From NCBI GenBank assembly GCA_964035545.1, contig OZ037770.1:15552642-15616641 (forward strand): DNA of 64,000 bases, in the 5' to 3' direction. Positions 36,475 through 59,311 of the stretch are shown here, piece by piece (position 1 is the stretch's first letter; each line of letters opens with the position of its first letter). The stretch comes from Bugula neritina. Lineage: Eukaryota > Animalia > Bryozoa. The notes beneath the pieces were generated by a model. The model saw only the letters and a program-made list of their open reading frames with translations, ran no database searches and had not been told where the DNA came from. The translations under genes were made by a program, and so were the position numbers.

Positions 36475-39400
36475 ATGGCTAAAGGTAAGTCAGTTTTAAT
36501 AAACCATGTATATATAACTTAGTAATCAGTTCCTGTAATCATAGTTTGAGGTGTATACCAATCCTAATATCTCTCTAACATCTTACCCTCATGTATTACA
36601 TAGAATGCCTAAAGTTCAAATGCAAAACACACACAATCAAGAAACAGCTGAGATACTTTTTCTGTGATTCTTTTTATCAAAAATCTATATGCATTTGGTT
36701 TATTTTTAAAACTAGCATTTGCAATATTCTAATTGAGAATCATATAACCCTCTTTATCAACCAGCTTTTATTCTCACTTGGCCAGATACATATTATTTAC
36801 ATGATTGGAAATATAATATAAAAGAGTTCTAATTGTTGGTTTAATAAATGCTATATCTGGCTATTGTAAATAGAAGATAGTATTTTTATTTATTATATAT
36901 GTGATTTGTAGATAGAAGATATAGAATATGGTTCAACACTGCCAGTATAGATGAGTCTGATAGAGAATGGAAGAAGATTACTCCAGATAAAGACTATACC
37001 ATAGATGAGTTGAGACATGAAAGTAGACGTCATACTGTGACTCATGTTATACTGAGGAATGACATTCCTCCAGATATTCACATTCTGTTCCCTCATCTCA
37101 CTCACCTGGTGGTGAAGGAAGTGCCGTCCTCTGCTGGCTATAGAAGGTGATGTGACACATGTTGGAGTGCTCTAACTTCTATAGCATGTAGTATAATATG
37201 TTATATAGTATATATAGTATCTATAGTGTATATATATATATATATATATATATATATATATATATATATATATATATATATATATATATATATATATATA
37301 TATATATATATATATATATATATATATATATATATATATATATATATATATATATATATATATATATGTATATATATATATATAAATAGGTATACGAGAA
37401 ACATTGTTGATTTATTACTTTATTAGGTAAAATAATTCTACTAATATTTCGGGTACCACTGTACCCATCTTCAGAGTAGCAATGAATGAAATTCAAAAAT
37501 TATTATGTTACGTTAGACGTTATGCATGACACAAAGAGTAGAGAGTGGCAGTTATTGTAAATTATTGAAACTTAGGGAGATAATCTTATTTTATATATTA
37601 CGCAGGTCAAAAATTATACTGATTGTTTTGCATAAAAAATAAATTAGAGTTGACAAAAAAAATATAGATATCCAAGTATAAAAATGGCAAGAATTAGTGA
37701 AACTATGCGAGAGTTGAGTAGTGTGGAGCTATTGATATAGTTTTAGTGGTATGGAGTAATTTTGTTTATTGAGTTGCGGTTTTATTTGTTTAATGTAGAG
37801 AGCTTCGGCTACTTTTCGATGGTGGATTCCTTTAAATGAATGATTTAAAACTGTTACATTGTCTATTGATATGTTTCCATGATTAGTGGTAGAGATGTGT
37901 TGATAAATTTTGGAATTGATGTCATTGCAGTGTTCATGTATCCTGTGTGATAGGCGACGTCCGGTTTCGCCTACATATGTTTGTTGACAGGTAGCTTCAG
38001 GGCAGGTTGTTTTGTAGACTAGGTTGTGAATGTGTTCTTTATTGGTTTTATCTTTGAGATTAAAATGTGAACTTAAGGGGGTTCCTTTAAATAAAATCCG
38101 GGCATTGAGTTCATTTGAAAAAGAGTCTGTAATTAATTTATTGAGGGAGCGGATTAGTTTTTCTCCTGTTACTCCTTTATAAGGCAGCTGAAGTAAAATG
38201 TGTTTCCTGTTGTCTTTTTCACTAAGTAGTCCGTCACCAATGTTGTTAATAGTTTTCTCTATTACATATTTAGGGTAACCATTTTTATGTTCAAAAACAT
38301 TTCGAATATAGTTAAGTTCTTGGGTCTTAAGTGCTGGAGTAGAACAGATTTTATTAGCCCTTAATACTAGTGACTTGAGTGTGCTTAGCTTCCACGTTTT
38401 TAGTGAGAAAGAGTTCCAATGTAAATATGTATCGTTATGTGTTGGCTTGCGGAATACTGTGGTTTCCACTGAGCTATTGTGTCGCAAAACTGTAACATCC
38501 AGAAAAGAAAGTGATTTATTGGTTTCTAGTTCGTGTGTAAATTTTATGTTAGGATGAAAATTATTAAGTGTGTTGAGTGTTGTGTTAATATAATCAGGGT
38601 CTATTGTTGCAAATGTGTCATCTATGTATCTCACCCAAGGTGACATTGAATTCAATTTTGGTAATACTTTCTGTTCTAGTTTTGTCATGAATATATATAT
38701 ATATATATATATATATATATATATATATATATATATATATATATATATATACATATATATAAATAAAAGTAATGAACGGTTATAAAATTTGATTTAAAAC
38801 ACTTTATTAGGTACTAATAGTTTCATGTGCATTGAATGTACACAATCGTCAGATAAAATGTTAAGATTACATCTTAGTATTTTTTTTGTATATGGAAAAT
38901 ATTCTACTATACCATTCAAACTGTCATTATTTTTGTGGACATCTCAAGGCATATATCTTTAATTTTTTTCATTTGAATTGCTTTGCTTGCCTGGTTTGCT
39001 ATACTATAGTATAATAGAAGAATTACTCATCAAATTTATATGTATACTTAATTATACTAATACGTGTACTTATACTGCATATTAATTATATTATGTTAGT
39101 AGATAGAATTATATACATGTCTGTTATATTACAGCATATCTCAACTGAGTAATCTTCAAACACTGGATATGTCAAGGAATATCCTGTTTGGTAATCTACC
39201 AGATGATATGTTCACATCTTTACAATCACTGAGAGAGTTGAATATAAGTCACTGTGGACTCAGTACTCTACCAAACAGGTATATGTACTGCAGTATATAA
39301 TATACATAATATATTAATTATATATATAATAGCATGAAAAAGGTAATTCTCTTCTTCAAATTATGACCTTGGTTCTTTAAAGAATGCGCTCTATGGGTGG

Positions 39401-59311: not shown

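Follow-up and report, generated by a model that had tools for sequence, protein, structure and literature searches.

The 64,000-nt stretch of Bugula neritina DNA analysed here (assembly GCA_964035545.1, contig OZ037770.1, positions 15,552,642-15,616,641 of the forward strand; hereafter the window, to which all coordinates refer) carries at 36475-59311 one intact, transcribed gene, the predicted product of which combines leucine-rich repeats (LRRs), a Roc GTPase, a COR region and a caspase in a single polypeptide. We have very little doubt that this fusion is real. The same genome holds at least about 60 co-linear LRR-Roc-COR-caspase genes, of which this is one, and, judging from database protein models, the architecture is also present in the bryozoan Watersipora subatra. 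The family thus represents ROCO proteins with a new output domain or, seen from the other end, caspases with a new regulatory extension.

One gene from the LRRs to the caspase

The gene model was assembled by phase arithmetic and exon-wise translation, and database searches were run exon by exon; the caspase domain was viewed as a whole only via the Watersipora database proteins. The model comprises 15 exons on the plus strand (Table 1). They are bordered by AG and GT, their phases agree from one exon to the next, and no frame is interrupted by a stop; together they amount to 4113 nt, that is, 1370 codons and a TAA stop. The encoded modules follow one another in the order short N-terminus, LRRs, Roc, COR-A, COR-B, an acidic linker of ~95 residues, and a caspase consisting of a large subunit, a long linker and a small subunit. 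Approximately 10-11 LRRs can be counted, contributed by four two-repeat cassette exons and by the repeats that open the large exon; exon 2 probably forms the LRR cap and the first repeat. The initial annotation, which had been made from the DNA letters without database searches, had placed the Roc-COR exon, the two linker exons and the junctions between them where we find them and had proposed a product of ~1370 residues; borders, phases and open frames bear out each of these points.

In order to see how the exons are joined in transcripts, assembled contigs from four runs (X1-X4), each from a different study, were placed on positions 53400-59350. The joint that leads out of the Roc-COR exon, 55288>55729, is present in X1, X2 and X4, hence in three studies, and the following joint, 55821>56854, in X2. 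Since both joints have a depth of 36.6 in X2, they probably lie on the same contig. Entry into the caspase through 57044>57148 is found in X1, X2 and X3. Further downstream, 58250>58459 could be read from pieces of one X4 contig, and the joints 58635>58740 and 58849>59168 are present as well. The four joints taken from the joints table are flanked by GT..AG, and such skips are typical of cDNA. Every joint of the chain 55288>55729>56854>57148, which the initial annotation had put forward as a check of the fusion, was therefore seen in the RNA-derived contigs.

Comparison with the paralogs points in the same direction. The donor that closes the large exon (T|GTAWGT, phase 1) occupies the same position and has the same phase in 21 of 21 copies (20 paralog loci and the window copy) and is preceded by the sequence ...ALL(Y/H)P, whereas the tails that would be read through it are 4-37 codons long and unconserved. 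Linker exon 2 was detected in 18 of the 20 paralogs and is conserved at the protein level, with ratios of nonsynonymous to synonymous substitution rates (dN/dS) of 0.12-0.3 in divergent pairs. It contains no conserved Met, and in the window copy no Met at all. An exon that is conserved as coding sequence and offers no start codon has to be spliced to an upstream coding sequence, and the Roc-COR exon is the sole candidate. Linker exon 1, which owing to its 1-1 phase can be skipped with the frame kept, was found by protein searches only in the window copy, in the four closest of the 20 paralogs (L013-L016) and in L033, a copy on a metagenome contig. Its Met is present in the window copy and in L013 and absent from L014-L016, which have ETLSEAD there. 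The initial annotation had seen no separate start for the caspase, and none emerges from the comparison: the ATG near 55737 is not conserved, most paralogs are without the exon that holds it, and the next exon has no Met in this copy. The same exon order is found at all 20 paralog loci fetched.

Models in which the modules are already joined were retrieved from another genus by a search of 1.8 billion representative proteins. The Watersipora subatra RefSeq proteins XP_067947674.1 (1419 aa) and XP_067948342.1 (1413 aa) contain LRRs and a complete Peptidase_C14 domain, and between the two they match the Roc-COR exon of the window over ~650 residues. At least five further Watersipora models have Peptidase_C14. 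Four models (P0034, P0040, P0151 and P0152) combine LRRs with Peptidase_C14 and align to the Roc-COR exon and then to the caspase exons, in the same order as in Bugula; the C-terminal motif of linker exon 2 also aligns to P0152. Pfam by itself recognizes Roc or COR only weakly in these models, with COR-A under the cut-off in XP_067948342.1 (P0040) and Roc and COR-A matched in the shorter XP_067949566.1 (P0017). NCBI names these relatives 'MFHAS1 homolog' or 'uncharacterized'. With splice-site conservation, RNA joints and the Watersipora models in agreement, the earlier proposal of one polypeptide with LRR, Roc, COR and caspase modules stands.

The ROCO and caspase modules

The large exon encodes the last LRRs (residues ~1-90), Roc (~95-290), COR-A (~291-470) and COR-B (~471-668). 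Pfam matched Roc with 34.6 bits (cut-off 27) as well as LRR families; the G1, G3 and G4 motifs are intact, with the P-loop GNTMAGKTS at 53593-53619, DMGGQ at 53755-53769 and THKD at 53962-53973. Across 27 homologs of the exon, G104, K110, T139, D158, G160 and D230 are invariant. The COR-A match, at 19.7 bits, lies under its cut-off of 35.3. A profile search of the PDB with the 27 homologs retrieved the Roco protein of Chlorobium tepidum, Roco2 of M. barkeri, LRRK1 and LRRK2, over the LRR-Roc part. An AlphaFold model of the exon product built on the same alignment reached a mean local confidence (pLDDT) of 85.8 and a predicted template-modelling score (pTM) of 0.83, and Foldseek matched this model to LRRK1 (5e-23), to the LRR-Roc-COR crystal structure of C. 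tepidum Roco (CtRoco; 9e-21) and to many LRRK2 structures, in alignments covering 650-750 columns; the isolated COR domain 3dpt was matched too (7e-10). Since the predicted fold matches those of known COR-containing proteins, the COR assignment, weak by sequence, holds on structural grounds. With a Roc domain recognizable from its motifs and a COR region supported by the structural model, the product is assigned to the ROCO proteins. A homodimer prediction for the COR part (exon residues 290-668, in duplicate), run without controls, gave a score of 0.00 and speaks neither for nor against self-association through COR.

At the end of COR-B (55129-55288), residues C616, H618, C619, W634 and C656 are invariant or nearly so, forming a C-x-H-C...W-C...C pattern in the 27 homologs. 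This Cys/His/Trp cluster, which falls within the final 55 residues encoded by the exon, might bind a metal.

The caspase is spread over several exons, three of which match Pfam Peptidase_C14 (PF00656) with 43.7, 41.6 and 14.4 bits (cut-off 21.4), and each of the caspase exons can be aligned to Watersipora proteins that score 127-138 bits over the complete caspase domain. As the Watersipora domain is nearest to CED-3, caspase-3 and caspase-9, the module is a caspase of the animal type, as opposed to the caspase-like peptidases of bacteria. Pfam found no CARD, DED or Death domain on any exon, the N-terminal and linker exons included, which agrees with the initial annotation, where no death-fold prodomain had been seen. 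Likewise, neither NACHT nor NB-ARC was found by Pfam on any exon; the NTPase is the Ras-like Roc.

Among the attributes of peptidase family C14A, the fold and the catalytic His-Cys dyad can be recognized in the sequence and the canonical S1 pocket cannot. The dyad is intact in 18 of 20 paralogs, while two have lost the Cys, and the first S1 Arg (in CRKGSD) is retained in this copy. The reference for the small subunit was the caspase-3 stretch YYSWRNSKDGSWFIQ. The pentapeptide QACxG is replaced by ETCSG, and the form E-x-C-S-G is shared by this copy and all 20 paralogs. The small-subunit stretch aligns without gaps to this part of caspase-3, YYSWRNSKDGSWFIQSL, so that SWR corresponds to SKI (58748-58759); where the Arg would stand, this copy accordingly has Ile, and the paralogs show R, I, V or S. 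The Watersipora relatives retain QACSG or QACGG together with the SWR Arg, and the exchange of Glu for Gln in S1 is therefore lineage-specific. Judged by these motifs, the S1 pocket is remodelled in this lineage. The Gln of the pentapeptide normally helps to hold the P1 aspartate, and its replacement by Glu, accompanied in this copy by Ile for Arg, suggests a P1 preference that differs from the classical Asp specificity.

Gene family, selection and intronic inserts

In the 216-Mb genome the Roc-COR exon has 66 scored matches (182 candidates at first look), 58-78% identical, 64 of which are open frames without a stop. By a hand tally, caspase exons follow on the same strand within ~7.5 kb in 63 of the 66; the remaining three have one at 10-15 kb. 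The N-terminal exon has 67 matches in the same genome, located upstream of paralogs, at a distance of 5 kb in the case of the C5 copies. Many of the copies form same-strand clusters on C1 (33.8-35.1 Mb), C5 and C6 (2.5-6.3 Mb). L033, found on a JGI metagenome contig, is a co-linear copy with 91% nucleotide identity and 88% identity of the Roc-COR protein; its identity to the window is 90-91% in exons and introns alike, without exon-intron contrast.

The two ends of the protein evolve differently. Between divergent paralogs, Roc, COR-A and COR-B have a dN/dS of ~0.1-0.3 and the caspase exons mostly of ~0.07-0.4, some casp2 values from tblastn matches that run across stops having been set aside. 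For closely related pairs it reaches 0.4-1.0 in the LRRs that open the large exon, the repeats to which this measurement of LRR diversification refers, as distinct from the cassette exons. Substitution patterns therefore place the Roc, COR, linker and caspase exons under purifying selection and mark the LRR part as faster-changing, as would be expected if a conserved switch and a conserved effector served a binding surface that changes more quickly.

A word-based search with a Watersipora caspase region returned four long proteins only, all from Watersipora, and says little on other phyla. A look-up in the ESM-Atlas, to be taken as a lead only, gave MFHAS1-like and bacterial Roco clusters, all under the 0.9 mark.

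Clusters of caspase exons (40-60% identical to those of this gene) also occur where no Roc-COR exon was scored nearby, namely at C7:7.58-7.71 Mb, C7:5.07-5.11 Mb, C9:9.32-9.41 Mb, C2:30.5 Mb, C8:4.8-5.0 Mb and C4:21.1-21.2 Mb, and the total number of caspase loci in the genome seems to be well above 100.

Within the window copy, the two inter-subunit linker exons are each 177 nt long, have the phase 1-1 and open with similar sequences; most paralogs show one such exon, so that an exon duplication seems to have taken place in this copy. Its introns house three inserts. A Ty3/gypsy-type long terminal repeat (LTR) retrotransposon is flanked by LTRs of ~410 nt (40020-40429 and 47489-47900) that are 100% identical, wherefore the insertion is recent. 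Its minus-strand frames match Pfam RVT_1, RT_RNaseH, rve and Integrase_H2C2, with protease-reverse transcriptase and RNaseH-integrase in separate open reading frames (ORFs), and its GC content is 0.51-0.58, compared with ~0.33 around it. The second insert is a (GT)n microsatellite. Four ORFs of 800-950 aa on both strands of 50490-52967 were rejected as spurious artefacts of this repeat. Two intronic ATG-initiated ORFs on the minus strand, at 37729-38754 (341 aa) and 49309-50160 (283 aa), have no Pfam match. The third insert, at about 56043-56829, is missing from L033, which is 91% identical, and contigs of three runs continue from it into unrelated sequence, with a depth of up to ~260 in X2. 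Probably it represents a repeat that is dispersed and transcribed.

Table 1. Exons of the ROCO-caspase gene and intronic inserts in the window.
Feature	Position	Strand	Basis
Exon 1, ATG GCT AAA G, followed by GTAAGT donor	36475-36484	+	Sequence, phase check
Exon 2, N-terminal region	36912-37146	+	Conserved upstream of paralogs; no significant Pfam match
LRR cassette exon 1, 144 nt, phase 2-2, two repeats	39135-39278	+	Aligns to Watersipora LRR regions
LRR cassette exon 2, 144 nt, phase 2-2	39616-39759	+	Aligns to Watersipora LRR regions
LTR retrotransposon, Ty3/gypsy type, intron between LRR cassettes 2 and 3	40020-47900	-	Direct repeats, Pfam
LRR cassette exon 3, 144 nt, phase 2-2	48035-48178	+	Aligns to Watersipora LRR regions
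LRR cassette exon 4, 144 nt, phase 2-2	48586-48729	+	Aligns to Watersipora LRR regions
(GT)n microsatellite, 2.5 kb, intron before Roc-COR exon	50490-52967		Tandem Repeats Finder, 99% matches; GC skew 0.85
Large LRR/Roc-COR exon, 2006 nt, opens after AG, ends at phase-1 donor T|GTATGT	53283-55288	+	
Linker exon 1, 93 nt, phase 1-1	55729-55821	+	RNA joints, homologs
Linker exon 2, phase 1-0, acidic stretch	56854-57044	+	Paralog conservation, RNA joints on both sides
Caspase exon 1, start of large subunit, conserved Arg in CRKGSD at 57223-57240	57148-57318	+	Pfam, RNA joint
Caspase exon 2, catalytic His (THG, 57632-57640) and Cys (ETCSG, 57761-57775)	57554-57776	+	Pfam, paralog motif table
Inter-subunit linker exon a, Asp-/Glu-rich	58074-58250	+	RNA contigs ending exactly at the two borders; phases
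Inter-subunit linker exon b, into start of small subunit	58459-58635	+	RNA joints, paralog conservation
Small-subunit exon	58740-58849	+	Weak Pfam Peptidase_C14 (14.4 bits), RNA joints, motif table
Last exon, TAA at 59309-59311	59168-59311	+	Aligns to C-termini of Watersipora models

Alternative readings, proposed mechanism and precedents

Other accounts of the locus have to be weighed against a functional fusion. It might consist of two adjacent genes, an MFHAS1-like LRR-Roc-COR gene that stops at 55312-55314 and a short-prodomain caspase gene read from the ATG near 55737, the fusion being an artefact or the result of rare read-through. Some details would suit such an arrangement: the frame of the Roc-COR exon meets a stop 8 codons beyond the donor, the ATG is present in linker exon 1 of this copy and of L013, the intron bins 55191-55588 have some contig depth, and the Watersipora RefSeq models P0022, P0025 and P0028 are without a caspase domain. 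It is nevertheless very improbable, given the joint 55288>55729 in three runs of three studies, with the next joint in X2 at equal depth, a donor that all 21 copies conserve next to tails that they do not, and fused RefSeq models in another genus. The proposed start fares no better, its Met being absent from L014-L016 and its exon not found by protein search in 16 of the 20 paralogs, and linker exon 2, under purifying selection yet without a Met here, must be an internal coding exon. A different objection concerns this copy alone, which could be a decaying member with little or no function, disrupted by a young retrotransposon and a microsatellite and deprived of the S1 Arg. The frame, intact over 15 exons, and the confinement of the insertions to introns speak against decay, as do contigs at least 99% identical to this copy in all four runs (10-16 per run), the linker-1 joints, which are possible only from this copy and its closest relatives, and a dN/dS of 0.07-0.38 relative to the closest paralog. 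What would suit decay is the element with identical LTRs, the 2.5-kb (GT)n tract, the extension of the gene over 22.8 kb with an N-terminal exon 16 kb upstream of Roc-COR (~2-8 kb in paralogs), and SKI in place of SKR; on balance we regard it as improbable.

A further alternative concerns the caspase itself. Here the fusion is real, and the caspase moiety is a protease with another P1 preference or a silent scaffold, so that the protein signals or processes substrates rather than kills. The Glu in place of the Gln of QACxG in this copy and 20 of 20 paralogs, the variable SWR Arg position, the two paralogs without the Cys and the lineage-specific nature of the change, as seen from Watersipora, are all in line with it. 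Against these stand the dyad kept in 18 of 20 paralogs, the low dN/dS of the caspase exons and the retained CRKGSD Arg, which, however, do not separate altered specificity from classical activity. We consider this alternative rather unlikely.

The reading that we favour, with modest confidence, takes the fused gene family and a sensor-switch-protease mode of action together. Several points weigh against it. That the runs are of RNA is a guess; on the caspase exons, the contigs are for the most part only 90-95% identical and thus derive from paralogs or a sibling lineage; and no single contig extends all the way from Roc-COR into the final caspase exon. With E-x-C-S-G throughout the family, Ile for the SWR Arg here and the Cys lost in two paralogs, part of the family, or all of it, could consist of non-Asp proteases or pseudo-proteases. 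A ligand, a dependence on GTP, dimerisation and protease activity are putative throughout. Moreover, in C. tepidum Roco GTP binding favours the monomer (PMC6337361), for which reason the direction of the switch is not to be assumed.

A single-chain mechanism of this kind, in which ligand binding and the GTP cycle would gate caspase dimerisation as the initial annotation had proposed, is plausible and the most economical reading. The LRR surface would bind a ligand, which may be a microbial, viral, allogeneic or damage signal, and binding would shift the nucleotide-dependent monomer-dimer cycle of Roc-COR via COR-B. Initiator caspases are activated by induced proximity, and the changed oligomeric state could likewise pair two C-terminal caspase domains and activate them, as death-fold adaptors do elsewhere. 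Cleavage in the acidic linkers may then release or mature the protease, candidate processing sites lying in the acidic pre-caspase linker (ending ...SNTD-K) and in the Asp/Glu-rich inter-subunit linker. A nucleotide-dependent transition between a monomer and a COR-B-mediated dimer is established for the Roc-COR modules of C. tepidum Roco and LRRK2 (PMC6337361).

To our knowledge, the animal ROCO proteins known so far close with a kinase or with no further domain, and the known animal caspases reach their sensors through death-fold adaptors. Among the former, MFHAS1 (MASL1) and MFHAS1-like proteins, to which the family is likened by architecture and by the names of its relatives, share the N-terminal LRRs followed by Roc-COR without a kinase. 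MFHAS1 ends after COR (PMC6337361), whereas a linker and a complete caspase lie beyond COR here, and ~60 or more members stand against one. LRRK1, LRRK2 and C. tepidum Roco have the predicted LRR-Roc-COR fold and the intact Roc motifs in common with the bryozoan protein, at 12-15% identity, but its output is a protease, and kinase, WD40, ankyrin and armadillo modules are absent. With the CARD/DED initiator caspases of the apoptosome, the inflammasome and the death-inducing signalling complex it shares a caspase that carries a regulated oligomerisation device at its N-terminal side, and by analogy proximity-induced activation is likely to be shared as well; it differs from them in having neither a death fold nor NACHT/NB-ARC, in being one chain without an adaptor, and in ETCSG instead of QACxG. 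The likeness to NLR and STAND platforms is in logic only, and the protein is neither an NLR nor a STAND protein.

The closest published precedent is bacterial. Proteins with LRRs, an AP-GTPase (Roc) and COR followed by one of at least 24 alternative C-terminal effectors, caspase included, have been described as counter-invader conflict systems (Kaur, Iyer, Burroughs and Aravind 2021, eLife, PMC8195603). The LRR-Roc-COR-caspase proteins among them have the same module order, fast-evolving LRRs and several paralogs per genome. They are, however, single-ORF proteins, whereas the gene described here is intron-rich and the Watersipora caspase is nearest to CED-3 and caspase-3/-9; on this comparison the fusion probably arose independently within animals. 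Our literature searches found no paper on an animal ROCO-caspase. The Roco review of 2019 nowhere mentions caspases (PMC6337361), and the recombinations treated in PMC3196919 and PMC9573974 are of death folds and kinases, not of Roc-COR with a caspase. The initial annotation had known of no characterised animal protein with this architecture. This is correct in that, as far as searched, it is otherwise undescribed in the literature, and has to be qualified in that it is present in RefSeq as automatic models, unnamed or labelled 'MFHAS1 homolog', and has been published for bacteria.

If the favoured reading is true, an LRR sensor and Roc-COR wired directly to a caspase constitute a minimal, adaptor-free activation platform, and a simple system in which to ask how the Roc-COR nucleotide cycle governs an output domain, a question open for LRRK2. 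The Gln-to-Glu change in S1 is a natural experiment in caspase specificity, and the likeness to the bacterial proteins raises the matter of convergence versus shared ancestry. With its size, its clustering and its fast LRRs, the family is more suggestive of immunity or allorecognition than of a single developmental death pathway, an alternative role being the cyclic polypide degeneration of bryozoans. As a tentative conjecture, possible rather than probable, bryozoans may carry at least 60 adaptor-free LRR-Roc-COR-caspase receptors per genome, in which Roc replaces NACHT/NB-ARC and diversifying LRRs trigger a built-in protease, in the Bugula lineage shifted from Asp by the Glu in S1; they would be a third independently evolved type of intracellular death receptor of animal immunity or allorecognition, convergent with the bacterial Roc-COR-caspase proteins. 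The same three features of the family suggest that invertebrate immunity, or the allorecognition of colonies, has an arm so far undescribed.

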